Shown one piece after another: positions 8,155 through 32,583 of a stretch of DNA of 64,000 bases. Position numbers and translations under genes: made by a program. Location of the stretch: positions 124,001-188,000 of IMG/VR virus record IMGVR_UViG_3300032050_000004; one strand, written 5' to 3'. A model generated the notes under the pieces. It made no database searches. It saw only the letters and a program-made list of their open reading frames with translations, and had not been told where the DNA came from. Numbering within the stretch: position 1 is the first letter of the stretch; each line of letters starts with the position of its first letter.

Positions 8155-11100
8155 TTAACCTGTCATACCTAATTTTTTCAACATTGCAATTAATTTAGGA
8201 GTTGGTGGCGGGTCAACGTGACTTGCACCCTTAGATGCAGCGTGGGCAAAAATTCCAAATTCAGTATATTCTATTTTATTTGCTTTCACATTACTTCCAG
8301 CAGCCGGTTTTGAATTCCAGCCCCATACATAATATGGATTTTTTCCTTGTATTGCAGCTTTCATTTTTGGATATCTTCCTAAAATTTCAGTACAAAGGTT
8401 GTAAGTAGCAGTTATTTGTGCATCAGTAAATTCCATGAATTCACTGTATCCACAATATTTGTAATCTAATGTGCAGTAACCCGGATTAGGCGTACCACCA
8501 TAACTAGCTTTTCCAACTGGTGCTACAGCATCATTTGAATATACGACTCTTTGTTCAGGCCCTGCCGGACCTTTACTTTTTACTCCAAAATGAGCACAAA
8601 TTTCAATACCTATACCATGTGCATTCCAATTATTACCATGAACCGATCTTATATCTTCTGGTATACCTGTTACTCTAGCTCCAGTCCAATCCACAGCATA
8701 GTGAATACCACCTTGATTGAATTCTTTATCACATGCACCTACACCATCACAAGTTCTTTGAGCACAACCAGTATAGCCCCAGCCATCAGTAATATGTAAA
8801 GTTATAGATCTTACTTCTCGTTTTTTAAATTGTCTTTCTTTACCTGTATGGATTGCAATTTTATTTTTTCCTCTTGTTACAACTGTACATTCATTAGACG
8901 TTCCCTGATTAATCCTATCCCCATCATTGCTTGCAGAAATATCTGTGTTTGTTGAAGAAATTTGTGGAGCACCTTGTGGATATAGTGCATTTAATAATCC
9001 ATATACTCTAGTTCTATAACTTGAAACGTATTCTCCATCTATACCAGCTGCACCATTAATTGTTAAACCAACTTTATTAATAGCTTTAATCAATTCCTCC
9101 TTTGAAGAATCAAGTGCTGGCATATATTGATATCTATTTTTTCCTGAATGAATATTTATAGCTTGACCTAATAAAATTTGTGAACTAAATAGTTCGTCCC
9201 AATCAGCATTTGTACTTCTAGTCAATATTATTTCTTTGTTTCCATTATAAGGAGCTGCTTGCCAAATTCCTTTATATTTTTTTACAATTGTATCATTTCC
9301 AGTATAACTTAAAACCCAAGTAAGTATTTTTTCATAATTGCTTCTCCAAGTGGTTTGAATTAAACCACGACCACTAAATTTATAAAAATCTGATTCATTT
9401 ATAAATGTTGCAGGAGTTGTTCTTGCTGCTTCTTTAATATTACTTGGAAACAAACTTTTTGGAAAACTTGTTCCTTTCCATGATGGGTCATTTGAATTTT
9501 TAGTATTTTTATCATTTCCTAAAGGCTTATTTGCATGAGCTGATATAAAATTAGCATCACTAAACAAATCTCCAGAAGTTTTATTATAATCTCTATTATA
9601 TTTATAAGCATATGCAATACCCGGATTTGTACCGTTATCAAGTGAATTCATGCCTTCTCTCACACTTGAAAACTTACCACCTGTCTCGCCATATATTATA
9701 CAAAATAAACATACAAATTCAAGAAAATTTATACCTCCAGTACCATATTCGGACCAAGTAACAGGTATAATTGTTTCCCAACACTTATTCCAATTTGCAG
9801 AATCAACTTTTCCTCTATTGTACATTGATGCTTTTCCGACAACTTCTGCATTTACCCAAGTTACAAAATCAGTATACTTATTGCTAGTATATGTTTTTAT
9901 TACAGCGTTAATTTCAGCAGGATTCCTAAGTTTTACATCTTTTAATTTTTTCAAAAGTTCTATATTTAATCCTTCTCCGAAATTTCCTCCTCCACTACCA
10001 CCATCTCCACCACCTCCGAATGGAGTGATTGTTCTTACGCTTCTTTTAGTGATAGGCATAATTAATGCAAAATTTCCCCCATTTCCAATTTTCATTTTCA
10101 TGGCTGAAATTTCTGTTTCCATATTATTAGGAGTTAATTTATGCTGAACTTCTAAAACCCAATATAGACCAGTAAAAATAGGTAAACCATCAATAGCTAG
10201 ATTCATGGTTGGAAAAATTTGAGCATTACCAAGAATATCTAAGCTTATTTTATAACTTCTTCCTTGCATTACAGCTAACATTGAACAATCGAACCCTTTC
10301 TTTTTATTTTGATTTTGATTGTTAACAATATCACTAGTAGCTTGTAAACTTTCAGATGTAACTTTATTATCGTCGGTGCCAGCTTTTACTGATTTAAGAA
10401 AAACATTATTAGGACTACCAAATTGAAAGGCTATTATATCTGTTTTTAAATTGTCTAAAGTTTTTAGAAAATTTTTATCTGGATAAATAGGACTATTATC
10501 ATTTTTGGTCAATCTATTTTCAGGTGTTGGTGCCCAAATAATTGAAAGTGCATTTCTACCTACTGCATTGCTATAATCTATATTTGGCTGGGGTTTAAAT
10601 AAATCTTTTAAATCACTGGTAAAACCTGCTGGTATAGGTTGTAATAAAAAGTTATTTAACTGACATATGTTTTGCATCATATTCAGCGTAGAAGTAGAAG
10701 TGTTATTTTCCAATAAGGGATCTGTATTAATAATAGCATCCCTTATATCCACTGCCGGATTATCTATAACAAGTGGATAATTGAAATTTAAATAGAATGC
10801 AGATGTACCATCAGTACTTCTGTATTTTTTCTCCAACACTGTCCTTAAATTAACGTCAGTTCCATCTGGTAATGCATCACTATTTTCTGTAGTAGCTAAA
10901 GAAATCCAAGCTTGACAAATATGGTGAAACTGTGTATATACTGCATTTATTTGTCCATCATCTCGTGAGTACGGCTCAACGGCACCGACGGTCACAATTT
11001 CTGTAGGAGTTTCACCTCTCGAAACAGCATCTTTATTTTCTGCCTCTTGTTTATCTTTTAATCTTTTTTCTTGTTCTTCTTCAGTTCCGGAAGTTAAGTT

Positions 11101-13374
11101 CAAGATTTTACTACAATAAAACCATAGATTGCTCCTAACTGTTTCATTTTTTAGACTTGTAACATAATCTGCTGGTGATGATAATTGTGTTTGTGAAACT
11201 AACCTTACTAAATAATCCTCTTTTTGTGCTTGTTCGTATCCAGAAATGGTTTGACCAGTTATTACTGGTAAAATTAAACTATCCAATGATTTATAAGTTG
11301 GCGTGGGAGCATTCACCATTTCCGCATAATTGATAAATACTCCGTATTTTGCTTCAGTTGGTGGATTATATTCTACTTTAAAAAATTGAAAATTCGGATT
11401 TTTTACTTTCTGAGGCATTTGTGTATCAGAAGATGGATCTCCATTTAATTGATCCACATCTAAAGGTGCATTTTTATTTCTAATATATGCAACAATTTCT
11501 GCTTTACCACCCTTATTTAAACATGAGTTTGCACCTGCAGCTTTGCTAGTCAATTTAGCTAATACATCTTTTGGATTATGATACATGACTCCATTCTGAA
11601 ACATGGAAACACAAACTAAACTTTTTGGATCTGAATTCAAAAATATTTCCTTATTTGTGGATGCTAAATCCATTTTTTCAAAATAACTAGCAAAATAATC
11701 TTGATAAGTTAAATTTGGATTATTTTTTGTTTTATCTGTAAATTCCTTTGTAAGTTCTCCTTTGCTATTAAAAATTTGTTTTACTTCCTCTGCAAATGTT
11801 TTTAAAGTTGTTCTGTCAGTTCCTTTTAATTTAAGGACTGCGTCAGAAAAATTTTCATATTCAGCATCTGTTAAGTTTGTTTGAGCTACTGCTAATGTAT
11901 TGAAAGCGTATCCGCAAGATGCTAAGCCTGCCCTTTGTATTAGATTGGTTATTATCTTATCAACACTTTGTCCCAAATATGGATTATTTTTTACGTGTTC
12001 AGCATTCGTTAATCTTTTTGCAATTTTTTCTCCTTCTATTGCAGGTTGGTCAGTAATTGCATTATTTTGATCAGATGCTTCTTGAATTATTGTTTCTGCT
12101 TGTTGTACACCTTCATATAAAGCTTGACAAAAATCTTCAACTTTTTTCAATTCTATTGGTGCCTGTGACCAAGGTTTTTGCTCACCAAATGCAGAAGTTT
12201 GCCCTAAATTATTTTCTTCAATTAAAGGATAATAATTTCCAAAAATTTCGTTGTTTGTAGGTCTTGATGTGTCTGCGTTATAGCCACTAATTCCACCCTC
12301 TAAAATATATCCCAGTATATAAGCACAATCACCAGCGAGTCTGGTCATCACATTATAGATCGTTTGAGTATCAATTAAAATATCTTCAACACTACTGTAA
12401 CCTTGAGCACTTGAGGCTTTGGTTATAGCATTTAAATTTGAAGTTATAATTGTTTTTGCATCTTCTATTTGTTTTTTTCCTTTGTCCGATTGTGTAAAAG
12501 CACTTAATGATGGTATGGTTGATTTAAACTCTATAGTAGTTGGAGAATTTATACTTGCAAGTATAGAATTACCTATTACTTCTAGTGATGAGTCAATTAT
12601 TGTATAATCTTTACCCTTAGGATCTTTTGTGTTAATATTAAATGTGACACCAGTAAATCCAGCAGAAGTCAAAGACTCGTCAGGACTTATTGAATCAAAT
12701 TTAAGTGTCCCCTGATTATAACTAGTTGCTATTGAAGTTGGGTCTCCAGCTAAAATAGTCAAAGTATCTCTTTGTAATTTGTATTTATCTTCTACTTGCT
12801 GTATTTTTTGTTTTATTTCAATTCCATTTTTTGCTATCTCTATGATAGAAGAATTTCCTTCAGAACCTTCAGTATTCTCTCCAAATTTATCTTTCAATTT
12901 TGCTACTGCAAAAAGATATTGATAAGGTATATCTCCAAAAAACCCAAATACATTAGGAATAAATTCGGCTTTTATTTCATAACTACCATCAGAAGATTGA
13001 TAAGTAGTCTTAACAGATTTTACTTGCAATAAAAAATTTACTGGTTTACCAACATAACCTTTTATGTATAAATTAAATTTTGGATATGGTAATTGGAATA
13101 AAATATCAAATTTGAATCTTTCATCTCTGCTATAAACCAAGTTACCATATAAATCTTTAAATGTAATATTTACAACTGGTTGTAAATTTGGTTTTATATC
13201 TATATCTAAACTAGTGATTCCAAATCCTAAATTTTCAGTAAATGCTTGAATTATATAAGTGTTTTTACCTGAAAAATCTTTTTTACCACCGCCAATAGGT
13301 GTAGCTTCAAGATAAAAATCTAGAGTAAGGTCTTGAGGTCTAATATCACTATCAACTGGTACTACTAAAGGCAT
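8155..13374 (-). CDS. Baseplate hub / tail-associated lysin with GH19-like lysozyme and Amidase_2 domains
   Basis: Hub-like region ending SLDILGNAQIFP..GLYWVLEVQHKLTP, then a Gly linker. GH19-like YGETGG..E and FSGRGLIQTTWRSNY follow, then amidase TLHITD/GIHYAVD/GIGIEI/FTDAQ/FAHA/HVDP. Confidence 0.8.
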   Translation of the reverse strand: MPLVVPVDSDIRPQDLTLDFYLEATPIGGGKKDFSGKNTYIIQAFTENLGFGITSLDIDIKPNLQPVVNITFKDLYGNLVYSRDERFKFDILFQLPYPKFNLYIKGYVGKPVNFLLQVKSVKTTYQSSDGSYEIKAEFIPNVFGFFGDIPYQYLFAVAKLKDKFGENTEGSEGNSSIIEIAKNGIEIKQKIQQVEDKYKLQRDTLTILAGDPTSIATSYNQGTLKFDSISPDESLTSAGFTGVTFNINTKDPKGKDYTIIDSSLEVIGNSILASINSPTTIEFKSTIPSLSAFTQSDKGKKQIEDAKTIITSNLNAITKASSAQGYSSVEDILIDTQTIYNVMTRLAGDCAYILGYILEGGISGYNADTSRPTNNEIFGNYYPLIEENNLGQTSAFGEQKPWSQAPIELKKVEDFCQALYEGVQQAETIIQEASDQNNAITDQPAIEGEKIAKRLTNAEHVKNNPYLGQSVDKIITNLIQRAGLASCGYAFNTLAVAQTNLTDAEYENFSDAVLKLKGTDRTTLKTFAEEVKQIFNSKGELTKEFTDKTKNNPNLTYQDYFASYFEKMDLASTNKEIFLNSDPKSLVCVSMFQNGVMYHNPKDVLAKLTSKAAGANSCLNKGGKAEIVAYIRNKNAPLDVDQLNGDPSSDTQMPQKVKNPNFQFFKVEYNPPTEAKYGVFINYAEMVNAPTPTYKSLDSLILPVITGQTISGYEQAQKEDYLVRLVSQTQLSSPADYVTSLKNETVRSNLWFYCSKILNLTSGTEEEQEKRLKDKQEAENKDAVSRGETPTEIVTVGAVEPYSRDDGQINAVYTQFHHICQAWISLATTENSDALPDGTDVNLRTVLEKKYRSTDGTSAFYLNFNYPLVIDNPAVDIRDAIINTDPLLENNTSTSTLNMMQNICQLNNFLLQPIPAGFTSDLKDLFKPQPNIDYSNAVGRNALSIIWAPTPENRLTKNDNSPIYPDKNFLKTLDNLKTDIIAFQFGSPNNVFLKSVKAGTDDNKVTSESLQATSDIVNNQNQNKKKGFDCSMLAVMQGRSYKISLDILGNAQIFPTMNLAIDGLPIFTGLYWVLEVQHKLTPNNMETEISAMKMKIGNGGNFALIMPITKRSVRTITPFGGGGDGGSGGGNFGEGLNIELLKKLKDVKLRNPAEINAVIKTYTSNKYTDFVTWVNAEVVGKASMYNRGKVDSANWNKCWETIIPVTWSEYGTGGINFLEFVCLFCIIYGETGGKFSSVREGMNSLDNGTNPGIAYAYKYNRDYNKTSGDLFSDANFISAHANKPLGNDKNTKNSNDPSWKGTSFPKSLFPSNIKEAARTTPATFINESDFYKFSGRGLIQTTWRSNYEKILTWVLSYTGNDTIVKKYKGIWQAAPYNGNKEIILTRSTNADWDELFSSQILLGQAINIHSGKNRYQYMPALDSSKEELIKAINKVGLTINGAAGIDGEYVSSYRTRVYGLLNALYPQGAPQISSTNTDISASNDGDRINQGTSNECTVVTRGKNKIAIHTGKERQFKKREVRSITLHITDGWGYTGCAQRTCDGVGACDKEFNQGGIHYAVDWTGARVTGIPEDIRSVHGNNWNAHGIGIEICAHFGVKSKGPAGPEQRVVYSNDAVAPVGKASYGGTPNPGYCTLDYKYCGYSEFMEFTDAQITATYNLCTEILGRYPKMKAAIQGKNPYYVWGWNSKPAAGSNVKANKIEYTEFGIFAHAASKGASHVDPPPTPKLIAMLKKLGMTG

Positions 13375-13375
13375 A

Positions 13376-13678
13376 TTATGAATTTCTATTTGCTAATACT
13401 TTATTATTGAATTCTGTGATTACTTCACTTAATGGATTTGGAACTCTTATTACTGCACCATTCGGAATATCAAACTCCATATAATAATTTGGATTAGCTA
13501 ATAATATAATCCAATAAAGAGTATCATCACCATACGCTTCTGATGCTATCCTATCTAATCTAGTCTTATTTGAATTATAAGTTACATATATATCAGTTGT
13601 TCTTTTACTAATTAATATTTTAGGAAAAGATTTCATTTCTCCGTTAAATGCAAGTTGTGAGTATCTTGAGAAAGCCAT
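13376..13678 (-). CDS. LysM-like baseplate wedge protein (gp53 / tail X-like)
   Basis: RLDRIASEAYGDDTLYWIILLANP...IPNGAVIRVP pattern. Confidence 0.8.
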   Translation of the reverse strand: MAFSRYSQLAFNGEMKSFPKILISKRTTDIYVTYNSNKTRLDRIASEAYGDDTLYWIILLANPNYYMEFDIPNGAVIRVPNPLSEVITEFNNKVLANRNS

Positions 13679-13714: not shown

Positions 13715-16700
13715 TTATGCAACATTTTCAGTTAGTAGAGGATTTGCTGCTTGATCTAGGTTTTGTGTTATTAGTATATTGTTAGTAGTTGGTGCATTTG
13801 GAGTTACGTCAGAATCTGCTTTTTTAACCTCACCAGTTGCTATATCTTGATCAGGTGTATCATTTAATATTCCAAAGAATCCAGTTTCATCACTTGCCAA
13901 TGGAGGTGCCAAGCTTGGATTGATACTCGCACCATATTTACCAAGCAATTTAAAGCTGAGAGTTACTGAAACCATTAAAGGTTGCACACCATCAGTTACC
14001 AAACCATTTTCTTCTCCAAAACCATCTAACGTCCAACTATTTTCTTTATAATCATAATCTACACTATCAAAAATCACATAGTGATCAACCCAATCTCCTA
14101 ATCTCATTTTACATACTGGGGGATTAGTGAAATTAAATCCTGTTTTTTCTGATGATGATTTGGAAGGTTTAGTCAATTTTTCTAAAAATTTCATTCTGTT
14201 TCTGAAATCAACTTTTGATCCCGAAAAGAATGCTGGTTGAAATAATAAATCTTTTTTCATTCCAGCCAATCTTTGAGTTGTATCTGAAAGAATACTCACT
14301 ACATCACCGTATTGTCCATCAGGAACTCTAGCTGTGTCTAATAAGTTTTTATATACGTTATCAAAACCTTTTCTTTGTTCTGAATATGGATTAGTAGTTG
14401 GTCTAAAAGATTTATCTAAATCATCTATTTTTTGTTGTAGAGATAATTGTTGTTTAATTAAATCATTTTTTTTCTGTTGTAAATCACTAATATCTTGATT
14501 TACTTGATTTGTTTGATTAATTTCTGCAGTAACAACATTAATTTGTTCATCAATATTAATTAATTGTTGTTTTGTGGCTGCAAGTTCAGCATCTACTTGA
14601 TCTTGAGTTCCCAATCCGCTTACTGGTTCATCAAAAACCATAGTATCAGTAAAGTTTTTATCAAATGTTTCTACATATGTTCTGAAATTTTCCCAGTCAA
14701 CTCCCATGTCTACAGTTTGAGCATAATCTGTGAGAACAACAAAAGAAATTGTACCAGATCTGTCACCCTTTGAATAGGTATATAATGACTCAGGTCTTCC
14801 AAGGAATGTATGTTCTGTCCAAGTTGCTTTTGAGTTATGTGAAAACTTTTCTATGTATGGCGGGAAATACATAACTCTATCATTAGCGGTATCCGGTATA
14901 GCCAAGTTTTCAATTGAGAAAATTAAATTTTTAGTAGACGCAGGCCCAGTATAAGGATTTACTATAGTGTATCTTTGTTTTGCTCTTAGTGGAGCACCAA
15001 AATTATCATAACCAATAATGAATTCTTTGTTTGATTGAGATAAATAGTTTTGATTTAATAATGAGTTTTCTCCATTTCTAATAGTGTTTATTATGTTGTG
15101 AACACCTCTTTTTCTTTTTCTAAAATCCACTTCCAATTGTTGTGTTGGAAGTGTTTGTGCCATCATTGAAATATCTGTACCTAATTCATCTGCAGGTGTT
15201 CCTGCTAAACCAATCAAAGGTTTAAGAATTAATTCAGGAGAATTGGAAAGATACAATCCATTATTTGCTACTATTACTTCTATGGGAACAGAGTTTGTTG
15301 CCTCTTTTCTCCCTTTAACCATATTGGCAAAATAATTAGGTATATATGGTGTAGGCGAAAGACCATTCAGTACATAAAATGCATTCCCAATATCACCCCA
15401 TCTTCTTCCCTGAAGACCCATAACATTCATTTCAAGTTGTCTTTGCTGAGCAAAGAAAACCCAATCTCCGTTACCTCTTAAATTTTGATTAAATGCAGGA
15501 CCTAACAAATTCCAATGTGGAAAATCAGTATCAGGGCTATCTAATGTTGCTATAAATTGATTCTTTAGCTTATTAAGTGCTCTAATTATTGCTCCGTTAA
15601 TATCAAGATTTGATACTCCTAAGAAAACGCTGGTCCCTCCAATAAACACATTTGTGCCCAAGGGACTTCCATCCGGATCCGGATTATTTTTTGCTAGTAA
15701 ACTTAATCTGTATGGTTCAGCTTCTTCATCAAGATTTACAAATTGAGGTTGATTACTTGCTAATAAATTATTTCTTTCTTGATCAGCGATTCCTTCTATA
15801 TCAATTATTGTAGCTTGATTGTTTGCTAATAAATTTGCTCTTTGAGGAGCAGCTACTGTATCAAGGTCAATAAATTGAGCAACATTAAATGCTAATAAAT
15901 TTTGTCTTTCAGATTGAGCAACTTGATCAAGATCTATTAATGTTGGTATATTGAATGATAATAAATCTAATCTCTCGACTGCAGCTAATGAATCCAAATC
16001 AATTATACTTGGAACATTGCTGGAAAGCATATTAGTTCTTATGGGTGTTGCTACACTATCTAGATCAATAAACTGTGGTTGATTAAATGCTAATAAATTA
16101 TTTCTTGAACTTATAGCATTAGTATCTAAATCAATAGTTGATGGTTGATTTTTTGAAAGTAAATTATTTCTTTGACTAATAGCTTCGGCATCTAAATCAA
16201 CAAATTGTGGTTGATTAAATGCTAATAAATTAGTTCTTAAACCTTGTGCTTCTGCATCTAAATCAACTAATAAATTTGATACATTTTTAGCTAATAATAA
16301 TAATCTTTCTTGTTGTGCTTGAGAATCTAAATCAATTAGCAAATCAGACGTATTATTTGCTAAAAGACCATATCTTATTGATGTAGCTAAGCTATCTAAA
16401 TCAATGGTTGTTTCTAAATTTTTAGAGAGTTGATCACTTCTGTTTCCGGCTGCTATTTGATCAAGGTCAAATAATCTTTCTACATTAGCATTTAATAACG
16501 ATGTTCTTATTGGAAGAGCTGTTGCATCTAAATCAATTTGTAAAATTCTAGAATTCGCTGCCTCATATTGTTTTCTTATTGGCTCTGCAACTGCATCCAA
16601 ACTTCCAAAAACCGGAATATTGAATGCTAATAAATTTGCTCTTAATGGCACCGCAACCTGATCAAGATCTTGAACTCTTATTGTTTTATTTTTAGCTAAA

Positions 16701-19700
16701 ATATCATCTCTGTTTTCAGCAGCAATTGCATCAAGATTTATTATCTTAATATTTTTATTGCTATTGAGTGCATTTTGTCTTGGCTCGACAGAGATCTGAT
16801 CTAAATCAATAAATTGCGGTTGATTGAAACTTAATAATGTTGTTCGAGATTGTGTTGCTAATCTCTCGATATCAATAATATTTTCAACATTTTTCTGTAA
16901 AATATCTGAACGATTTGCAGCAGCTATTGCATCTAAATTTATGATAGCAATTTCTGCATTTTTCGCTAATAAATCTTTTCTGTAAGGTGCAGCTTCTTTG
17001 TCTAAATCAGGAAATTGAGGTTGATTTTTTTCAGTTAATAATTTTCTTAAAATTTCCGCTTCTGCGTCTAGATTTATGCTAGATGCTATGTTTTTACTTA
17101 AAATGTTATTTCTTTGAACAGTTGCAGTAGCATCTAAATCAATTTGCTTAGTATCATTTTTAGCTAACGTATTAGTTCTAATAGGTAAAGCAATCGTATC
17201 AAGATCAATAAATTGATTTTGGTTGAATGATAATAAACTATTTCTTAAAGGTTCTGCATTAGCATCAAGATCAAATAATGTAATTTCGTTTTTACTTAAT
17301 AAATTCTTTCTTTCCGAACTAGCTAAAATATCTAAATCAATTAAACCATAAACATTTTTAGTAACTAGATTATTTCTAATTTCATTTGCAAGTCTATCTA
17401 GATCTATTACTTTAGTTTCGTTCTTTGATAAAAGTATACTTCTTTCTTGAGAAGCTAAATTATCTAGGTTTATTATTTCATAAACATTTCTTGTAAGTAA
17501 TGTGTTTCTTATCGATAGAGCTAAAGCATCTAAATCAAATTCTTTTATTTGATTTTTTTGAATTAGATCTTCTCTTTGACGTATAGCCAAAGTATCTAAA
17601 TCTATAAATTGAGCTTTATTAAAAGCTAATAATTTATTTCTTAATTTATTTGTATCCTTTTCTAGGTCGACTGGTAAAATTTCATTGAACTTCAATAAAG
17701 ATGTTCTATTAATAGTTGCCAGCTCATCCAGATCAAAAAGTTTATCTAAATTTTTTGATATTAATCTATTTCTGATTTCTGTAGCCTCTGCATCTAAATC
17801 AAATAATTTAAATACATTACTACTTAAAAGCAATTTTCTGTATTGTTCAGAAATTAAATCTAAATTTATTCTTGTTTCAACATTTTTTGATAATAAATCA
17901 TCTCTTTCTTGAGCTGAAATTTTATCAAGATCGATACTTTTACTTTCGTTTTTACTTAATGTTAAAGTTCTGATTTGTAATCCTAACTTATCCAAATCTA
18001 TAGGGGTATCAGAATTAGATGCAAGTAATTTATTTCTAATATCTTTTGCTTCAGCATCTAAATCAAAATATGTTATTTGATTTTTACTAACTAAATTTCT
18101 TCTAATATCTAATGCTAAGGCATCTAGATTGAATAGTTCTTCTACATTTTTATTAAGAAGAGAATTTCTAATGACACCAGCTTGTTCATCAAGTAAACCA
18201 TTTGCTTCAGTATATTTGTTTTTACTGATAAGGTTTTCTCTTTGAACATTTGATATTTTTTCAATATCAATTAAAGCATCGATGTTTTTAGAAATTAATC
18301 TATTTCTGACAGTCAGTGCTTCAAATTCAATATCTATTATTTTACCTTTGTTTTTACTTAATAGATTAGTTCTTGTAATCTCTATCAATTCATCCGTACC
18401 CACAGATGTATATCCGGGATCATTAGATTTTAAAAGGTTTTGTCTATATAAATTTGCAAGTTTATCTAAATCATTTAAAGAAGGTACATTTTTACTTTTT
18501 AATTCTTCTCTGAATTGTGAAGCATAAAGGTCTAGATCTAAACTTGCATATGATATGTTTTTTGAAAGAGAATTGGTTCTTGCTTTTAATGAAATTAAAT
18601 CTAAATTAGCTTCTACTACATCGTTCTTAGCTAATAAATTTCTTCTAATCTCTAAAGCATTAGTGTCTAATGTAGTATCAATTATTTTATTGATATCATA
18701 ATTTTTAGTTAGAAGATTAGTTCTGGTTATTCTAGCAATTGTTTCCAGTTCTTCCGAAAAATCTTCTTTATTTTTAGCTAAAAGATTTTTTCTCGGATTT
18801 AAAGCAATTTCCTCAAGAATTCTATTAAAAGTATCGTCATAATTATTTTTACCCAATAATTGTTCACGATAAGGAATAGCTGCTAAATCTAAATCAATTA
18901 ATTTTTTAAGATTTCTAGTGATAAGTCTTATTCTTTCTGGTGATGCAACTTCATCAAGACTAATATCTCCGAAATTCTGATTTTTAGAGAGTAATGGCAA
19001 TCTTATTTTACTGGATAATTCATCTAATTCACCGTTTGCTTCAGTATAATAATTTTTACTTAATAAATTAGATCTCTGATTTATAGATAAAATATCTATG
19101 TTAATTAAATTACTTACGTTTTTAGCAATTAGACTATTTCTAAGAGGTATTGCTTCCTCATCAATATCTTTATATACTGATTGATTTTTGGCTAGTAATT
19201 CTTTTCTATAGTTTTCTACTTCACTTTCTAAATTTATAGAATTTAAATTCTGATTTGTATTTAAAAGATTTAATCTCTGGATTTTTGCTTGTTCATCAAG
19301 ATCTATTAATTGATTTTGATTTCTTGCAAGTAAATTTTTTCTTAATATTTCAACCTCTTCAAAATTAGATACAATATCTACAAATTGATTATATTTTAAA
19401 ATATTATTTCTTTGTATTTCTCCTAATTTATCTAAATCAATTTCTTTATTTTGATTCTTACTCAATAAATTAAATCTTTGATTTATTGATAAATCATCTA
19501 TTCCAATTAAATTACTTACATTTTTTGAAATAAGCCTATTTCTACTAGATATGGCTTCTTCATCAAGATCAACAGTTTTAGTTTGATTTTTACTTAATAA
19601 ACTTGATCTTATTAGATCACTATTAACATCATTATCCGAAATAATTTCATTTTTACTAAGAAGAGCATTCCTATTATTTTCAGCAAGTTTATCTAAATCA

Positions 19701-21460
19701 AATAATTTTATATTATTTTTATTTATTAGAGATGTCCTTATCTTTTCAGATACTTCATCTATAGAAAATGCATCAATTTGGTTTTTATTTAACGACGCAT
19801 TTCTAAAATCTTTAGCGATACTATCAAGGTCAATTAAATCATTTTGATTTCTTGCTAATAATGATTTTCTTGTATTATCAAAATTTTTATCTGCAGAATC
19901 TATAACTTGATTTTTTGCTACAAGAGTAGTTCTAATTCTATTAGCAATTAATTCTAAATCCTCTCTATTTAAATTTTCGTTTTTAGCTAATAAGTTTAAT
20001 CTTTGAATTATTGAAGATTCGTCAAGTAAGTTGTTTACACCTCCCTCAAAAGTGTTTTTTGAAAGAAGATTGTTCCTAATTTCACTAGCCAATCCTTCTA
20101 TATCAAAAACATTCTTAAGATTTTTACTCAAAATTCTGAGTCTTTCTTTAATAGCAGTTTCTTCTAAAATGTTTCGTTCGGAATTTTCATTTTTAGCCAG
20201 AGTGCTATTTCTTATTATTGCAGAAATATTATCTAATTCACCATTTGCTTCTGTATAGTCATTTCTCTTTAATAAATTTGATCTTTGATTTATAGATAAC
20301 AAATCAATGTTTATTAAATTAGATAAATTCTTGGAAATTAATTTATTTCTTAAGGTTTCTGATTCCTGATCTAGATCCTTAGGGTTGGTTTGATTTTTTG
20401 CTAATAAATTTTTTCTTATCTCTTCCTGATCGGCTAATTCATTCGAAACGTTTTTTGAAATTTGATTGAATTTAAGCTGATAATCTCTATTTTCTTTAGA
20501 TAGTTCATCTAAATCTGTAACTTTATTTTCATTTTTACTAAGTAATGAAAGTCTGTAATTATTATAATCATTACTATTATCTATACTTTCATCATAATAA
20601 TTTTTATTTAGAGTATTATTTCTTATTTCTGAAGCAAGAAGATCAAGATTTATTTCTTCAAAATTATTTTTTGCTAGAAGAAATTGCCTTACTACTGAGA
20701 AATCATTATTTTTTACATTATCAATAATTTGATTTTTTGAAAGCAGACTACTTCTAATTTCTTCGGATGACTTATCAATATCAAAAGAGTTGAAATTACT
20801 ATTTTTTGCTAATAAATTATTTCTTTGAACTTCTGAACTAGAATCTAATATCTGATTAGTTCCTTCGTAATTATTTTTATTTAACAGAGCATTTCGATAA
20901 TTTTCTGCCGCCTTTTCAACATCAGCAATATCAGTCAAATTTCTACTTAATAAATTAAATCTTGTAACATTAGCATATCTTTCTATGCTATCTGGATTGA
21001 CAATTTCATTTTTTGGTAGCAAATTCCTTCTTGCAGCTGCTCCGGTTCTATCTAATTTACCATAAAGCTGAGATTCATTTTTAGCTAAAAGTGATAATCT
21101 GGTCTTTTCAGATAATTCTTCTAGATCTTTATCAGTATTTAATAATATATTTTTTGAAATAAGGGTTTCTCTAATTTCTTTAGAAATTTTATCTGGATCA
21201 ATTATATTATCAACATTTTTTGATAGTAAAACAGACCTTAAATATTGAGAATTTTCATCTAAATTGGCCGAAATAGTTTGATTTCTTGCAAGATTATCCT
21301 TTCTTATCTTGTAAGCGTCGTATAAATTCTTGGGATTAGGTACATTTTTACTTATCAGTATTTGCCTTACTGAATCTGTATAATTACCAAAAAACTCCTC
21401 AAATTTGACCCTTTGTCTATATTCTTCTTCAGACTCAAAAGGAAAATTCTCAATCATCAA
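13715..21460 (-). CDS. Giant repeat protein with C-terminal tube-initiator/baseplate-like (gp48/gp54-like) domain
   Basis: About 1900 aa of 22-25 aa repeats. C-terminal domain has YFPPYIEKFSHNSKATW..FLGRPESLYTYSKGDRSGTISF and PPVCKMRLGDW. Sits between the tape measure and LysM wedge genes. Confidence 0.65.
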   Translation of the reverse strand: MMIENFPFESEEEYRQRVKFEEFFGNYTDSVRQILISKNVPNPKNLYDAYKIRKDNLARNQTISANLDENSQYLRSVLLSKNVDNIIDPDKISKEIRETLISKNILLNTDKDLEELSEKTRLSLLAKNESQLYGKLDRTGAAARRNLLPKNEIVNPDSIERYANVTRFNLLSRNLTDIADVEKAAENYRNALLNKNNYEGTNQILDSSSEVQRNNLLAKNSNFNSFDIDKSSEEIRSSLLSKNQIIDNVKNNDFSVVRQFLLAKNNFEEINLDLLASEIRNNTLNKNYYDESIDNSNDYNNYRLSLLSKNENKVTDLDELSKENRDYQLKFNQISKNVSNELADQEEIRKNLLAKNQTNPKDLDQESETLRNKLISKNLSNLINIDLLSINQRSNLLKRNDYTEANGELDNISAIIRNSTLAKNENSERNILEETAIKERLRILSKNLKNVFDIEGLASEIRNNLLSKNTFEGGVNNLLDESSIIQRLNLLAKNENLNREDLELIANRIRTTLVAKNQVIDSADKNFDNTRKSLLARNQNDLIDLDSIAKDFRNASLNKNQIDAFSIDEVSEKIRTSLINKNNIKLFDLDKLAENNRNALLSKNEIISDNDVNSDLIRSSLLSKNQTKTVDLDEEAISSRNRLISKNVSNLIGIDDLSINQRFNLLSKNQNKEIDLDKLGEIQRNNILKYNQFVDIVSNFEEVEILRKNLLARNQNQLIDLDEQAKIQRLNLLNTNQNLNSINLESEVENYRKELLAKNQSVYKDIDEEAIPLRNSLIAKNVSNLINIDILSINQRSNLLSKNYYTEANGELDELSSKIRLPLLSKNQNFGDISLDEVASPERIRLITRNLKKLIDLDLAAIPYREQLLGKNNYDDTFNRILEEIALNPRKNLLAKNKEDFSEELETIARITRTNLLTKNYDINKIIDTTLDTNALEIRRNLLAKNDVVEANLDLISLKARTNSLSKNISYASLDLDLYASQFREELKSKNVPSLNDLDKLANLYRQNLLKSNDPGYTSVGTDELIEITRTNLLSKNKGKIIDIEFEALTVRNRLISKNIDALIDIEKISNVQRENLISKNKYTEANGLLDEQAGVIRNSLLNKNVEELFNLDALALDIRRNLVSKNQITYFDLDAEAKDIRNKLLASNSDTPIDLDKLGLQIRTLTLSKNESKSIDLDKISAQERDDLLSKNVETRINLDLISEQYRKLLLSSNVFKLFDLDAEATEIRNRLISKNLDKLFDLDELATINRTSLLKFNEILPVDLEKDTNKLRNKLLAFNKAQFIDLDTLAIRQREDLIQKNQIKEFDLDALALSIRNTLLTRNVYEIINLDNLASQERSILLSKNETKVIDLDRLANEIRNNLVTKNVYGLIDLDILASSERKNLLSKNEITLFDLDANAEPLRNSLLSFNQNQFIDLDTIALPIRTNTLAKNDTKQIDLDATATVQRNNILSKNIASSINLDAEAEILRKLLTEKNQPQFPDLDKEAAPYRKDLLAKNAEIAIINLDAIAAANRSDILQKNVENIIDIERLATQSRTTLLSFNQPQFIDLDQISVEPRQNALNSNKNIKIINLDAIAAENRDDILAKNKTIRVQDLDQVAVPLRANLLAFNIPVFGSLDAVAEPIRKQYEAANSRILQIDLDATALPIRTSLLNANVERLFDLDQIAAGNRSDQLSKNLETTIDLDSLATSIRYGLLANNTSDLLIDLDSQAQQERLLLLAKNVSNLLVDLDAEAQGLRTNLLAFNQPQFVDLDAEAISQRNNLLSKNQPSTIDLDTNAISSRNNLLAFNQPQFIDLDSVATPIRTNMLSSNVPSIIDLDSLAAVERLDLLSFNIPTLIDLDQVAQSERQNLLAFNVAQFIDLDTVAAPQRANLLANNQATIIDIEGIADQERNNLLASNQPQFVNLDEEAEPYRLSLLAKNNPDPDGSPLGTNVFIGGTSVFLGVSNLDINGAIIRALNKLKNQFIATLDSPDTDFPHWNLLGPAFNQNLRGNGDWVFFAQQRQLEMNVMGLQGRRWGDIGNAFYVLNGLSPTPYIPNYFANMVKGRKEATNSVPIEVIVANNGLYLSNSPELILKPLIGLAGTPADELGTDISMMAQTLPTQQLEVDFRKRKRGVHNIINTIRNGENSLLNQNYLSQSNKEFIIGYDNFGAPLRAKQRYTIVNPYTGPASTKNLIFSIENLAIPDTANDRVMYFPPYIEKFSHNSKATWTEHTFLGRPESLYTYSKGDRSGTISFVVLTDYAQTVDMGVDWENFRTYVETFDKNFTDTMVFDEPVSGLGTQDQVDAELAATKQQLINIDEQINVVTAEINQTNQVNQDISDLQQKKNDLIKQQLSLQQKIDDLDKSFRPTTNPYSEQRKGFDNVYKNLLDTARVPDGQYGDVVSILSDTTQRLAGMKKDLLFQPAFFSGSKVDFRNRMKFLEKLTKPSKSSSEKTGFNFTNPPVCKMRLGDWVDHYVIFDSVDYDYKENSWTLDGFGEENGLVTDGVQPLMVSVTLSFKLLGKYGASINPSLAPPLASDETGFFGILNDTPDQDIATGEVKKADSDVTPNAPTTNNILITQNLDQAANPLLTENVA
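15690..21350 (-). repeat. Protein-level tandem repeat, consensus IDLDxxAxxxRxxLLxxN, roughly 80 copies
   Basis: For example IDLDSVATPIRTNMLSSNVPSI / IDLDSLAAVERLDLLSFNIPTL / IDLDQVAQSERQNLLAFNVAQF (22-aa period). Copy number estimated from span divided by period. Confidence 0.9.
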
Positions 21461-21514: not shown

Positions 21515-24500
21515 TTAAGTTCTATTATAATTAGCCTCGACAATTATCTGCTGCAACTGTCTTCCGTTCAATTTCAAGTCTATTTGTATAGGTTTTATCT
21601 GAACAACTTGTGTTCCAGCAGTCTCTCTACCTCCTGCTACTGCACCCTCTCTTCTTGTGGTTGTTAAATCTGTTCCTAAGGCTGCAGCTGCTTTTGCTCT
21701 CTGTATTAAACTTATTTCATTATTACCCCCCGGTTTTGGAGCAGTAGCTACAGTTTTTAGTCTATCTTTTTCTTTGTTGTAATCAGCCATAGATTTGGTT
21801 GAAATTCCAAAGCTTGAAGAAACATTATTTAGAGATCTTCCTAATACATTCAAGCTAGATGCCATTGAAATTATACCTGAAGAAGCAGTCAAACCTCTGG
21901 TTCCAAATGATATTAACGTAGATGTTAATCCACTAATAGTTGGAAGGGCACTTGCGAATAAAGGCCAAGGAACTAATGAAAAAGATGTAAATCCACTTGT
22001 AGCTGATTTTAAACTCTTTCCTAAAATCATTAATGCAAATCCTGCAGCAATTAATTGAGGTGCTACTATTCCTATCATAGAAAACCTCATAATTGGTGCA
22101 ATTAAAGAATTAATTATAGGAACTTGAGCTAAAATACCATCAATTTTTAAATTAGCTATTGATGCTAACGATCTGAATATTCTTGTGACTCCGAGAACTG
22201 AGAAAATTGCTGGAATAATAAATGGTATCATCATAGACCATCTAACCAATCCAGAAATCATAGTACTCGCTGTAGCACTTAATAGACTAGCAAGTGTAAT
22301 CAATGGTACAGGAGATAGAGTAACTATACCTAATAAAATTCTGCTTAATTTTCTAACCCCTATAGCACTTACAATTGCCGGACCTGTAAAAAATGCAACT
22401 GCAGAAAATTTGATCAAACCTTTTATCAATCTACCAGATGTTGCAGTAAGAACTGTACCTAAACTTAATAAATTTTTGAAAAATATTGTTTGTATTTGAT
22501 TTATATTTTTTGTTAAACTTACAAGGCCTTTTGCAGTCAAAATTGCGGGTGCAACAAAAGGTGTAATTGATGAAAATTTGACTATTGCTTTTAACAAAGG
22601 AATACTTCTAAAACCTAGAACTGTTGACAATTGTAATAAATTTTTATTAAAAATTGTCTGTATTTGATTTATTACTTGTGTAAGAGTTACTAAACCTCTA
22701 GCAGCAGATATTGCTGGTGTTGTAACTGCTCTAATTCCTGCAAATTTAAATAGTGCTTTACCTAATTTCCAACTTGTAGAACTTGTAACACTAGCTAATT
22801 TATTTAGATTTTTTGCAACAATAGGTTGAATTTGATTTATAATCTTACTAAGTTGAACTAATCTGTTTGCAGATGTAATCGCTGGACTAACAAGTGCTCT
22901 TATTCCTAAAAATTTAACTAGACCTTTTACTATAGCACCGGAGGTATTATTTAAAACTGTTCCCAATTGCTGCATATTTTTTAATGGAACAAAAACAACT
23001 TGACTTAAAAATTTACTTATTGGAACTAAACCTCTTGCAGCTGATATAGCAGGTATTACAAATGGCATACCGGAGCTGAGTTTTTTAATTCCAACTACAA
23101 TTGAAGAAGATGTTGTTGCTAATACAAAGCCTATATTGAACATTTTAGCAAAATTAAGAGGAACTGTTCCTCTTAATAATCTTGTAATAAATACCAAAGA
23201 CTTTGCAGCAACAATTGCAAGTCCAGCATAATAACCAGCTCTACTGAAAGTTATGAACCCTCTGCTCAAATTAGGAGAAGCATAATATAAAGTATCACCT
23301 ATATTGATTAATTTTTTAGAATTAATATGTAGGGCATTTTTTAAACTATTTGTTACTGATACTATGCCTTTTGCTGCAAAAATAGCACCGATGACACTAG
23401 AACCCATTTTAGCAAATGTTTTAAAACCCGCAGTCAAAACTGGAGAAATAAATGCTAATGAAAATGCTATGTTGCTTAATTTTTTTGTATCTATTGGAAC
23501 AACCTGAGAAAGTTGCTTTGTAATAAATTTAACTCCTTCGGCTACTGCAATTGCTGGTAAAATTGGAACTGATGAAGCTGCAAACTTTGTTAAACCCCAA
23601 AAAAGTTTTCCAGAAGTTTTAGATAAAGTAGAGGCTAAATTTATCAAACTCGAAGCGTTTATCGCAGGCATAGATGATAAATTTCTGGAAATACTGTTGA
23701 TACCTTTGGCAACAACTACTGCAGGACCAATTACAGTTGTAATACCAGCAAATTTCCCTAAACCTTTAGTCAATTTCCAAGCAGTACTACTTAAAGTTGT
23801 TGCTAATTGTTTTAATGCACTTTGACTTACTACAGGTAAATTTGATAGTGTTTTTGTGATTTTCAATAAACTATTAGCAGCTTTTACAGCTCTATTTGCA
23901 AGAAATCCAGCTGCTGATAATTTTAGTAGACCTTTTGATATTGGTCCCATGGTCGAAGTCATCACACTAGCTATGTTCAATAATTTTCCCGCATTTATCG
24001 GAAGTGTCATTAATAATATAAATGTTACTCTTCTTAGACCGGAAGCTGCTTGTGCAGCTTTATTTGCAACAGATGCTGCATTACTTAATTTAGATAGACC
24101 TTTAGCAATTGGTTCGGAAGTATTTGATAAAATATATGCAAGAGTCAAAAATCTTGTTGGGGATAAAAATGGTACACCTCTCAAAAATGTTGCTGTTTTA
24201 AAAATATTAAGAGCAGCGTTGGATGCAAGTTTTGCAAATGGTGCTGTTAATCCAATTTTCTTTAATCCATTAGACAGAGGTCCAGACATCGTAGCCAAAG
24301 TAACTGCAGTAGTAATTAATTTTATTGGATTCAACATTGGAATTCCTGCAAGATATTTAGTAGCTTTTAAAATAAACAATGATGACATTGAGGCTAACAT
24401 TGCTACTGATGTCAGTAAAGATATTTTGAATAAACCTTTGGCCAAGGGAGTAGACATTGCTGATAACGTTAACGCAGTTGTCAATAATTTTACTGGACTC

Positions 24501-27500
24501 AAAAGTGGTATTTGATTTAATAGTCTAACAGTTTTTAGAATAAAAATTGAAGATATTGATGATAATGCAGCAACGGGACTTAATAATGCTATTTTTTTGA
24601 GTCCCATTGATAATGGTGTAGAAATTATAGAAAGAGTTATAGCGTTTGTAATTAAAATTCCGGGATTTAATACTGGGACTCTAGATAAAATATTTGTAAT
24701 TAATAAAATAGATTTAGCAGCTATCAATGCTGGTACAGCAAAAAATCCTATAAATCCTAATTTTTTCATACCTTTCGAAAATGCTTGAGCCGAAAGAGAA
24801 ATTGCAACTCCAGTCATCACCAACTTTACTGGATCTAGAGGAGTAACATTAGCAAGAAATTTAGTTATTATTGAAATAGATTTAGCTGCAATCATAGCGG
24901 GTATTGCTAAGAAACCAATGAATCCTAATTTTTTTAATCCTTTTGAAAATGCAGAAGAAGATAAACTCAAAGCATTAGCTGTATTTATCAAAATTGCCAT
25001 GTTCAATGGAGTAATTTTAGATAAAGAACTAGTTATACTAACCAAAGATCTAGCAGCATAAATTGCAGGTATTGCAAACACTCCTAATAACCCTAATTTA
25101 AATAAACTTTTTCCAAATTTACCAGATACGGTATTTAGTATTGAAGCGGTTGTTATTAAAATTGCAGCATTTAAAGGTGTGACTTTAGCAAGTGTTTTAG
25201 TTACTGTCAATATTCCAAACGCTGCTAATATTGCAAATGGAGTAAAAACGGAAAGTGCTCCGAGCTTGATTAAGCTTTTTGTAAAAGGCCAAGCAATTTT
25301 TGATAATACTGAAGATGTGACTATCAAAAATGCAGGATTCAACATTGGAACTGCCTTCAACATTTTTGTTACTCCTAAAATACCCGCAGCAGCTACTAAA
25401 GCTAATGGAGTAAATGCTGCTAATGGTTGTAATTTTAAAAATGCTTTTGTAAATGGCCAAACAACTTTAGAAACTGTTCCTGCAGTTGTAGTTAATGTTT
25501 TTGCATTAAGTGTAGGCACAGCTTTTAACATTTTTGTTACACCTAAAATTCCCAATGTTGCTAGTAACGCTAAAGGAGTAAGAACTGAAACTAATCCTAA
25601 TTTTAACATTGCTTTTGCAAACTTACCGGAAGTAGAAGCCATCGTTGAAGCTGTCATTCCCAAGTTTTTTGGGTTTAATACTGGTACATTATTTAATAAT
25701 CTAGAAATTAAATTTATTCCAGCTGCTGATACAACGCCTAAAACAACAAATGGACTAACCAAACCTAACTTTATAAGTCCAAAAATAAAAGATGCAGAAA
25801 CTGCTGCCAATGATTGACCAAATGCTTGCATTTTTTTAAGGTCAACAATTTTTACATCTGCTAACATTCTACTTATTAAATTAATTGCTCCAGCTGAAAC
25901 AATTGCTAGAACAGTGAAAGGACTTACTAAGCCTAATTTTATCAACCCTTTGATCATAGCAGAACCAACCTTGCCCATACTGTCACCAAAGTTTTGCATT
26001 TTTGCGAGATCAATTATTTTAATTCTTGATAATGCTTGTGAAATTATATTTATACTTACAGCAGAAGCCATAGCTAATACTGCAAATGGTGAAACCAAAG
26101 CCAATTTAACTAACCCTTTTATCATTGACATTGATATTAAAGCAAGACTTTGACCAAATTGACTTACTTTTTTCACATCAACAGCAGAAATATTTTTTAA
26201 TGCTACGGCAACAACCATCAAAGCACCAGCTGAAACCATTGCCAGTGCAGCAGGACCAGCTACCAAACCAAGTTTAGTAAGTCCCCAAGCAATAGAGCCC
26301 ATTGAATCTCCTATCTGAGAAATAATTTTTGGATTCACACCTTTTGCTGCACCTAATCCACGTAGAAAATATCCAAATGCAATCATTGCCGGAGCAGCAA
26401 TTAAACCTGCAGCTCCAAAAATTAATAATGCAGGAGAAATTATAACTAAAGCTGCTGCTAAAGCAATTAACCCAGCTGCACCTTTAAAAGTGGCTCCTAT
26501 ATTTTTACCCATAGATATAATAGCTGGAACCAATATAGAAAATCCTTTTGCTGCTAAATAAACTGAAGCTCCAAGCATTAACATAGCAGCACCTAGAGCT
26601 AACAACGGTATTGCAGCAATAGAACTTGCAGTAGCAAGAATATAAACCATAGCAACAAAACCACCCATAACTATTGCAATTGCACCTAATGCTGCTCCTG
26701 CATTTTTAGCATTATTGAATGAATTAACTAAAGTTGCGAAACCTGTTGCAGCAAATTGAATTCCTTTCCCAATTAATAGCATTGCGATTCCCAAGGCAAC
26801 AAAAGCTGCAGCTAAAGATAAAATTTGAGCAGGATTTATTTTTGAAAACTGTTGCAACATTGTTGGAGGCGTTTTCATTCCTTTCATTTTTCCGCCGATG
26901 TCTGGGGTTTGTGTAGTTACCTTACTTGCTAATGTTTCTGTAGCTTTTTTACTTGCACCACCACCAACACCAGCAAAGGCAGATTTTATTTGTGATCCTA
27001 AACCAGACAACATTTTTAGAGGTGAAGTAATTCCTCTAAATAAAATACCTGCAAATTTTGCCATTGCTGAAGGCCCAAACGTTAACATAAGGATACCACC
27101 TAACAAAGCCATTGCTTTAACCCATTTACCAGTTTCAGCTCCAAATACTTTATCAATAACATTGCCCACTCTAACGAAAATTGCTCTCAATTTATCAAGG
27201 GCATGTTTCAACATTTCTAAATAAGGTTGAAACATTGTGAATGTGGCTAATACCTCGTTAGCTAAATTATTTAATTTTTCTTCTAAGGCTTGTCTGCTCT
27301 TCGCAGCTTTCTCCATATTTTCAGCATCTGATTTTGATTTATTCATCATTGCTTGAATACTTCCCTTAGAAACATTTTTTAGATCTTGCATTCCCTCCAA
27401 CCCTTCAAATTTCCACTTGCCACCTTGTTTCACAGCTTTAGAAAGTAAAAAATCTTTTTCGTCATCACTCAATGCATTAAACACACCGGGTGGAATTGCC

Positions 27501-32566: not shown

Positions 32567-32583
32567 ATAGTTTTTTTTAATAA

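Follow-up and report, generated by a model that had tools for sequence, protein, structure and literature searches.

Tail-tube initiators of contractile systems, such as T4 gp48/gp54, Afp7/Pvc7, the initiators of P1 and A-1(L) and phiKZ gp88, share a tube-type beta-sandwich fold, and in T4 the genes 48 and 54 are found directly after the tape measure gene, in the order 26-51-27-28-29-48-54. T4 gp48 has only a 26-residue N-terminal anchor loop, which runs outward between gp53 and the first sheath layer and not into the lumen, together with a helix-turn-helix in contact with the tape measure protein (TMP) (preprint 10.64898/2026.03.06.709160). Tail length in phages and related injection systems is explained by a single ruler, the tape measure (T4 gp29, lambda gpH), while the tail assembly chaperones lambda gpG/gpGT are encoded by small overlapping genes upstream of the TMP that are joined by a programmed frameshift. 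The locus described here, from an uncultivated T4-like jumbo myophage, encodes a tube-initiator-like protein that is 7–8 times longer than these initiators and whose N-terminal 1,935 residues form a periodic arm without counterpart among them. The length of this arm follows that of the neighbouring presumed TMP across relatives, which points to a second, previously undescribed length-matched component of long phage tails.

The repeat array and its gene

The DNA analysed (the window) is a stretch of 64,000 nucleotides, positions 124,001 to 188,000 of the IMG/VR record IMGVR_UViG_3300032050_000004, and the features of interest are, in window coordinates:

13715..21457 (-), gene for the repeat-bearing tube-initiator-like protein, 2580 aa from the ATG (the P0001 numbering of the ORF includes one extra leading residue from the TTG at 21458-21460)
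21398..21457 (-), N-terminal head (residues 2-21), which together with the first unit (FxxxxxxxVRxxLISKN) is conserved across the repeat subfamily
15641..21397 (-), acidic and hydrophilic array of about 87 units of about 22 aa (residues 22-1940)
18197..20314 (-), stretch holding three higher-order YTEANG blocks (nt about 20240-20314, 19031-19105 and 18197-18271), an old segmental duplication inside the array
14936..15640 (-), junction with a conserved GGTSVFLGVS beta-hairpin and a poorly predicted linker region (residues 1941-2175)
14666..14935 (-), predicted tube-fold half A (residues about 2176-2265; conserved MYFPPYI...FLGRPE..YTY...ISF.VLTD)
14405..14605 (-), predicted long helical hairpin inserted into the tube fold (residues about 2286-2352), variable among relatives
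13889..14221 (-), predicted tube-fold half B (residues about 2414-2524; conserved FQPAFFSG.KVDF...TRP...PPVC..LGDW...VQPM)
21515..29032 (-), upstream 2505-aa presumed TMP
13376..13678 (-), downstream 100-aa gp53-like baseplate wedge protein (PF11246, E 1.6e-5; phrog_7145, E 5.5e-12)
8155..13374 (-), 1739-aa protein with a C-terminal Amidase_2 domain, by position the hub/spike-associated cell-wall hydrolase (the T4 gp5 slot)
31613..33462 (-), two adjacent T4 gp26-like baseplate hub genes (PF12322) that mark the hub module

One ORF spans 13715-21460 (-), but the listed TTG is immediately followed by an ATG and the 76%-identical ortholog L085 (related loci are here numbered with the prefix L) starts with MIENF, so the real start is the ATG at 21457. 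A search for the anchor R-x2-[L]-[L]-x1-2-N revealed 83 in-phase anchors with spacings of 22 (50 times), 23 (16), 24 (7) and a few of 21–27, while two spacings of 44/45 hide one unit each. A looser chain, [RK]-x6-N, gave 86 anchors and 87 units between residues 32 and 1960, and the number of units is accordingly given as 85–87, with the consensus I-D-L-D-x-x-A-x-x-x-R-x-x-L-L-x-K-N. The identity at lag 22 is 0.256 against 0.085 +/- 0.006 in shuffled sequences (z about 27). Among the 50 units of exactly 22 aa, which were chosen by the R/N anchor, the frequencies are D2 66%, L3 72%, D4 78% (+14% E), A7 68%, L14 86% and L15 76%, and R and N are present in 86 of the 87 units. Units 1-46 are irregular (21–27 aa) while units 47-83 are almost all 22–23 aa, in agreement with the original prediction, which had noted more irregular units at the N-terminus. 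The three YTEANG blocks are likewise real and lie at residues about 383-407, 786-810 and 1064-1088, with the best higher-order self-match at lag 403 aa (64% identity over 88 aa). At the DNA level only one weak 66-bp array (16058-16271, 3.2 copies) was seen, so the array is old and diverged.

Modelling with AlphaFold2 predicts a 14-residue amphipathic helix followed by an 8-residue linker in each unit (pLDDT 87) but no tertiary fold (pTM 0.25), and the one short helix per unit proposed in the original prediction was thereby supported. An LRR-like solenoid was rejected since the model shows no beta-strand and no packing. No Pfam or PHROG repeat family was found at E <= 10, there was no PDB sequence hit, no Foldseek match in PDB or the AFDB clusters reached a probability above 0.03, and an ESM Atlas feature search on the array gave no usable hit. 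The repeat, described as unfamiliar in the original prediction, hence remains without a match in these collections.

Predicted tube fold and gene context

Following the array is a 640-aa C-terminal domain, for which the AlphaFold2 model shows a core with pLDDT above 90 that adopts a split tail-tube beta-sandwich. The top Foldseek hits are initiators of contractile injection systems and phages at probability 1.0, and VIA-align gave Z 9.1–10.8 over 141–155 residues to P1 9ay5_G, Pvc 6j0n_b, Afp7 6rao_G and A-1(L) 8kea_R, and Z 8.8 to T4 5iv5_BE. Plain tube proteins score only slightly lower (8.9), so the fold alone does not separate an initiator from a tube protein. The predicted helical hairpin is inserted into the tube fold where T4 gp48 has its TMP-contacting helix-turn-helix. 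Searches with the whole protein, the array and the C-terminal domain against Pfam, PHROGs, NCBIfam and PDB sequences gave only coiled-coil noise from the helical insertion, and PF11091 (T4_tail_cap) was not found in the genome, although the controls of that search also failed to hit anywhere. Alignment of the family profile with T4 gp48 and gp54 using hhalign gave probabilities below 1%, and the N-terminus of T4 gp48 shows no likeness to the unit. The tube-initiator-like nature of the domain, as put forward in the original prediction, is therefore supported at the level of fold and synteny only.

When analysing the gene order it was found to be gp26-like x2, 366-aa, 186-aa, TMP, the repeat gene, gp53-like and hydrolase, placing the gene directly after the presumed tape measure within the hub module. 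The same order is conserved in relatives, which carry M23, VanY or lysozyme domains in the slot of the hydrolase. Two sheath genes and a gp19-like tube gene lie in the same genome, showing a contractile tail.

The upstream 2505-aa protein is called a tape measure from synteny (the gp29 slot), size and architecture only, having an N-terminal coiled coil, a conserved central domain, 27.6 copies of a 56-aa hydrophobic repeat (residues 841-2384) and a conserved C-terminal end. Comparison with T4 gp29 by BLASTP, relaxed Pfam scans of orthologs and a profile search against PDB gave only weak signals, and the support from sequence families is one sub-threshold PhageMin_Tail hit in one ortholog.

Array length and tape measure length in related loci

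To address the proposal in the original prediction of a second ruler, the length of the array was compared with the length of the adjacent TMP across relatives, where the upstream ORFs are all homologs of the TMP of the window. This revealed a strong correlation, with r 0.967 and slope 0.95 over 25 loci and r 0.988 over 23 loci. Independent contrasts gave slope 0.94 and r 0.985, and every contrast with a TMP difference of 40 aa or more has the same sign, although the large contrasts that drive the correlation are few. Long pairs (TMP/array, aa) occur in two clades, one holding the window (2505/1934) and L002 (1488/1063) and the other L164 (1808/1560), sister to L014 (1064/643), and expansions thus occurred in at least two clades. 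The TMP and the arm grew by different repeats, 56 aa against 22 aa. The ratio of array to TMP is, however, not constant (0.61–0.86) and L164 lies about 190 aa above the regression line. As controls, the length of the TMP was compared with that of the C-terminal domain (r -0.07) and of the downstream hydrolase protein (r 0.03), neither showing a correlation. The TMPs of L085 and of the 1616-aa relative (L089/L166), the latter intended as a blind test of the regression, are cut by the contig end.

Comparison with L085 showed zero indels over 1934 array codons despite dN 0.17 and dS 1.14 (R11 and N18 being 100% conserved), and the last 675 aa of the TMP are also indel-free. The arms carry a net charge of -2.7 to -10.7 per 100 aa with GRAVY -0.5 to -1.2, while the last 60% of the TMPs have GRAVY +0.2 to +0.75. 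The array resembles tape measure proteins (T4 gp29, lambda gpH) in that its length scales with that of the neighbouring presumed TMP, that it grows by internal tandem duplication and that its length is tightly conserved between close relatives. It differs from them in being fused to a predicted tube-fold domain, in being hydrophilic and acidic with helices broken every 22 residues, and in having a separate presumed tape measure encoded next to it, and neither TMP sequence families nor the TMP domain layout were matched.

Possible location and role of the arm

The data suggest, with a probability of roughly 0.5, that six such arms, one per initiator subunit, leave the initiator ring and run the full length of the tail parallel to the tape measure, acting as co-ruler or chaperone. 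In the most likely picture the acidic, hydrophilic arms coat the unusually hydrophobic tape measure during assembly, giving a soluble rod of fixed length on which the periodically spaced invariant Arg, Asn and Asp residues face the incoming tube subunits, roughly one unit per tube ring. The arm would then work as a built-in tail-assembly chaperone and second ruler, stay in the lumen and leave with the tape measure at infection. The analogy to lambda gpG/gpGT is functional only, since the arm is one long chain covalently tied to the initiator instead of many small copies, is encoded by a 7.7-kb gene downstream of the TMP and involves no frameshift. There is no direct evidence of where the arm lies, or that it is in the virion at all, and the lumen is only tentatively preferred over the tube/sheath interface and over a position elsewhere or a role in assembly only, the latter two being equally and less likely. 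Six arms plus three to six TMP chains are estimated to fill 60–80% of a 40-A lumen, which is tight, and both the outward course of the T4 gp48 N-terminus and the strict periodicity with invariant polar residues speak against this picture, the latter fitting a periodic partner such as tube or sheath rings better than the TMPs of the short-tailed relatives, which have no strong repeats. If the arm spans the tail it would give a new principle for building or stabilising very long contractile tails, and the 22-aa units a natural modular handle for engineering the length of tails or injection devices. It is possible, though less likely than not, that tails in this phage group are built on two co-evolving rulers, the arm placing one unit on each tube or sheath layer, and that the length, or the stability, of a tail up to about 0.4 micrometre long is set by a register of discrete units rather than by one continuous helix.

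An external strand, in which the arms run up the tube/sheath interface or along the sheath with one unit docked per ring, as a strut or a safety tether against premature contraction of a very long tail, is a doubtful but not negligible alternative. It agrees with the position of the T4 gp48 N-terminal loop, with the gp53-like gene being the next gene here, with the single R-x-x-L-L-x-x-N unit that the wider family carries at its extreme N-terminus, as an anchor would, and with the strict period and invariant R, N and D, which argue for an identical repeating binding site. A 14-residue helix plus an 8-residue linker can span about 40 A, one ring, and the slope expected from 22 array residues per about 25.7 TMP residues (T4 calibration) is 0.86, while the largest contrast gives 871/1017 = 0.86. 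In addition, the arms are acidic while the outer face of the tube in phiKZ is reported to be positively charged (PMC13250141), and the tube protein is unusually conserved (70–83% identity where the initiator domain is about 35%). On the other hand there is little free space between tube and sheath in solved contractile tails, the arm would have to survive or release during contraction, and the number of units does not equal the predicted number of rings in all loci (predicted rings minus units about 10, 12, 10 and 0). A complex prediction of three tube-protein copies plus four units gave no answer (score 0.29, mark 0.32, controls not run) and counts neither for nor against binding.

It is unlikely that the roles are swapped or doubled, with the repeat arm as the true ruler and the 2505-aa hydrophobic protein as a length-matched membrane-channel cargo, or with the arm as an assembly-only scaffold that is cleaved off and absent from the virion. 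The lack of a significant tape-measure family hit for the 2505-aa protein, the absence of indels in both proteins between close relatives and the periodicity of 22 = 2 x 11, as repeats in multiples of 11 residues may also occur in tape measures, would allow it, but the 2505-aa protein occupies the gp29 slot with the coiled-coil, central-domain and hydrophobic-C-terminus layout of tape measures, and nothing marks a cleavage site. Least likely is a co-variation without function, reflecting shared ancestry or a general growth of proteins in bigger phages, with the array as a surface fibre or decoration unrelated to tail length. Most loci do fall in one tight cluster (TMP 990–1150 aa) and only four clearly different length classes exist, but within this cluster the rank correlation is still 0.77, the independent contrasts and the expansions in two clades remain, and general size scaling was rejected on the controls.

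The protein belongs to a metagenomic superfamily of 1231 representative clusters (E <= 0.001), one member being UFOVP117_37 of an uncultured Caudovirales phage, to which a tail-spanning arm would give a role. No match was found when the C-terminal domain and two wider-family members were compared by tblastn with 50,697 phage genomes, and PHROG scans of six wider-family members gave nothing useful. The two conserved tube-fold segments and the N-terminal R-x-x-L-L-x-x-N unit are shared within the superfamily, and the part N-terminal of the tube fold is about 0.9 times the TMP length over 83 loci with TMPs of 390–2505 aa (r 0.95). Most members are 1000–1700 aa with a non-repetitive polar N-terminal part, while only a subfamily of about 75 clusters has the 22-aa array, usually of about 30 units, and among everything retrieved only the protein of the window and L085 reach this size.

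Gene order and the repeat array

The virus record, of which bases 124001-188000 form the window, is 222 kb and 87% complete according to CheckV, with a GC content of about 30%. The genome encodes a replication set of DnaB, a RecA-like protein, PolA, a large DNA polymerase and an exonuclease together with two sheath paralogs and a 163-aa gp19-like tube protein, hence the tail is contractile. The two sheath paralogs are adjacent and both pass the Pfam sheath thresholds; two sheath proteins in one tail would be unusual. On the minus strand around the repeat protein the gene order is two T4 gp26-like hub genes (PF12322), ORFs of 124, 366 and 186 aa, a 2505-aa protein, the 2581-aa repeat protein, a 100-aa gp53-like wedge protein, a 1739-aa protein with an Amidase_2 domain and PolA. 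In T4 the order is 26-51-27-28-29(TMP)-48-54 and the repeat protein is therefore located exactly where T4 has its tube initiators. The features with coordinates are as follows (window positions unless stated otherwise).

31613-33462 (-): two tandem gp26-like (PF12322) hub genes, conserved as a pair in relatives, with an HNH/homing endonuclease gene just upstream of them (33540-33983 (-))
21515-29032 (-): the presumed tape measure (2505 aa)
8155-13374 (-): the giant protein after the gp53-like gene, with an Amidase_2 domain
209930-213426 of contig G000:C1 (loci L169-L172, outside the window): the two sheath paralogs, 786 and 879 aa
215739-216227 of contig G000:C1 (L168:1261-1749): the 163-aa tube protein

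Both the ORF and the repeat are real, with the true start being the ATG at 21457. Between residues about 22 and 1940 there are 85-87 in-phase units of about 22 aa, with the consensus I-D-L-D-x-x-A-x-x-x-R-x-x-L-L-[SA]-K-N-x-x-x-[LF], and identity at lag 22 is 0.256 compared to 0.085 in shuffles (z about 27). The N-terminal half is irregular, with units of 21–27 aa, while the units of the C-terminal half are almost uniformly 22–23 aa. Three YTEANG blocks, a higher-order block noted in the original prediction, lie where they had been placed and reflect a duplication at a 403-aa offset. At the DNA level the repeats are nearly erased.

Predicted structure of the C-terminal domain and of the repeat unit

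Searches with the C-terminal domain gave no match to any sequence family. An exhaustive HMMER search revealed 1231 representative clusters, 75 of them at E <= 1e-30, and all relatives share two conserved segments (residues 2193–2254 and 2401–2514 in the numbering of the translated ORF) separated by a variable insertion. AF2, run on an alignment of 107 sequences, gave a confident core with pLDDT above 90, consisting of a beta-sandwich split by a long helical hairpin. When the model was compared with known structures using Foldseek, the best hits were tube initiators of contractile injection systems and phages (7b5h_AK, 7aeb_M, the "baseplate-initiators" 8kea_P/R, 6j0n_b and 6u5b_g), all at probability 1.0, and VIA-align gave Z 9.1–10.8 over 141–155 residues to chains of P1, Pvc, Afp7, Streptomyces CIS and A-1(L), and 8.8 to T4 5iv5_BE. 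Fold and gene position together make tube initiator the best label, though no membership in the T4 families could be found at the sequence level.

To get a better understanding of the repeat, AF2 was also run on eight units with an in-phase alignment of 145 array windows from 47 proteins. This gave pLDDT 87 but pTM 0.25, with every unit predicted as a 14-residue helix (unit positions 3–16) followed by an 8-residue linker, and nothing resembling it was found in PDB or the AFDB clusters. The array does not look like a self-folding solenoid but rather like a string of docking helices. The hydrophobic positions 3, 7, 10, 14 and 15 form one stripe, R11 and N18 are invariant, and the array is acidic and hydrophilic in all relatives.

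Relatives and comparison of array length with the upstream protein

The repeat array defines a subfamily with proteins mostly of 1040–1550 aa and about 30 units, in which variant consensus sequences such as DLExDSxxYRxxxLSxN occur. The much larger remaining family has no array but carries a single R-x-x-L-L-x-x-N unit at its extreme N-terminus, for example ISPxxRDxLLxRNL, and the array therefore looks like an amplification of an ancestral N-terminal motif. No member tested was found in 50,697 cultivated-phage genomes or in PHROGs. The same phage was assembled twice from different samples (loci L004 and L084), the matched C-terminal domain being 100% identical on a 35-kb IMG/VR contig and on the 222-kb contig, while in one relative (L005, 7339-11422) the repeat protein is split into two ORFs (756 + 570 aa), which is a frameshift, a pseudogene or an assembly error.

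The original prediction proposed a comparison of repeat number with tape-measure length, and to address this, loci were recovered from IMG/VR, from metagenomes and by exact look-up. In all of them the order is a TMP homologue, the repeat protein, a roughly 100-aa protein and a large hydrolase protein, and the upstream ORFs are homologues of the 2505-aa protein in the window (E 1e-27 to 1e-91). Some relatives (L003, at 9063-9962, L110 and L016) have an extra gene inserted between the TMP and the repeat protein, a 299-aa DUF723 protein in L003, where a second DUF723 copy lies nearby, and a 362-aa ORF in L110, and these look like mobile endonuclease-type insertions. The giant protein after the gp53-like gene carries a different cell-wall hydrolase domain in each relative, Amidase_2 in the window and Peptidase_M23, VanY or phage lysozyme elsewhere (L003, L164 and L166), which looks like domain swapping in a gp5-like slot.

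When the array was measured from the N-terminus to the conserved junction motif, array length against TMP length gave r = 0.967 and slope 0.95 over 25 loci, and r = 0.988 over the 23 loci used for the controls. The controls showed no scaling, since TMP length gave r -0.07 against the C-terminal domain and r 0.03 against the downstream hydrolase protein.

Table. Examples of TMP length and array length (aa) in the window and in loci of relatives.
Locus; TMP; Array
L088; 990; 643
L003; 1105; 720
L012; 1142; 724
L002; 1488; 1063
L164; 1808; 1560
window; 2505; 1934

A tree of the C-terminal domains places the window and L002 in one clade, while L164 falls in another clade next to a short-armed sister, L014 (1064/643). 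Independent contrasts gave slope 0.94 and r 0.985, and all contrasts with a TMP difference of 40 aa or more agree in sign. The TMP and the arm grew by unrelated repeats, as the TMP of the window has a 56-aa unit and that of L164 a 19/57-aa periodicity while the arm has a unit of 22 or 23 aa. In the window, the presumed tape measure contains 27.6 copies of its 56-aa unit (residues 841–2384), which is strongly hydrophobic and basic, and over the last 60% of the protein GRAVY is +0.75 and net charge is +8.8 per 100 aa, whereas short-tailed relatives have no strong repeat. The motif GP[IL]xxGLxK[IL]S recurs in it and can also be found once in T4 gp29, although this similarity is weak (E 0.03–0.1).

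Measured instead to the start of the tube fold, the N-terminal part is about 0.9 times the TMP length over 83 loci that include the non-repetitive wider family (r 0.95, slope 0.89, intercept 27 aa), a figure that is not corrected for phylogeny. In this wider family (L021-L083 and L123-L163) the part before the tube fold is a polar, N/S/T/G-rich sequence of about 550–830 aa, roughly 0.9 times the length of the upstream ORF, and the length match may therefore predate the repeat array.

The relative L085, with a protein of 2622 aa and 76% identity in array DNA, aligns to the protein of the window with no indel across all 1934 array codons (dN 0.17, dS 1.14), and the indels all lie in the C-terminal domain. 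The last 675 aa of the two TMPs are also free of indels. For a tandem array this is strong evidence of selection on exact length and register.

Possible placement of the repeat arm

The length co-evolution and the strict length conservation of the array, in a protein with a predicted tube-initiator fold and the corresponding gene position, suggest that the arm spans the tail. This is an inference, as is the assignment of the 2505-aa protein as the TMP, which rests on synteny, on the layout of coiled coil, central domain and hydrophobic region and on one sub-threshold PhageMin_Tail hit. In the literature searched, initiators were found with short N-terminal loops or extensions only and no second length-matched tail protein was found; what is new here is thus a putative tube initiator carrying an undescribed repeat arm that appears to behave as a second ruler.

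The arm may be placed in the lumen, where six acidic amphipathic arms would sheathe the very hydrophobic TMP and present periodic polar residues to the tube subunits, a built-in chaperone and co-ruler that fits a residue-for-residue slope near 1. Alternatively it may run outside the tube, as in T4 the N-terminal loop of gp48 runs between gp53 and the first sheath layer (preprint 10.64898/2026.03.06.709160) and a gp53-like gene follows here; one unit per ring predicts a slope of about 0.86, which is what the largest contrast shows. The observed slopes (0.86–0.95) do not separate these two placements and a complex prediction with the tube protein gave no answer.

Among the homologues of the tube protein, one (P0325) is labelled by NCBI as coming from a Candidatus Izemoplasmatales MAG, which may be a host hint or a binning artefact. 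The 163-aa tube protein is 70–83% identical across more than 100 relatives while the initiator domain of the same phages is only about 30–40% identical, and the tube appears to be under exceptionally strong constraint.
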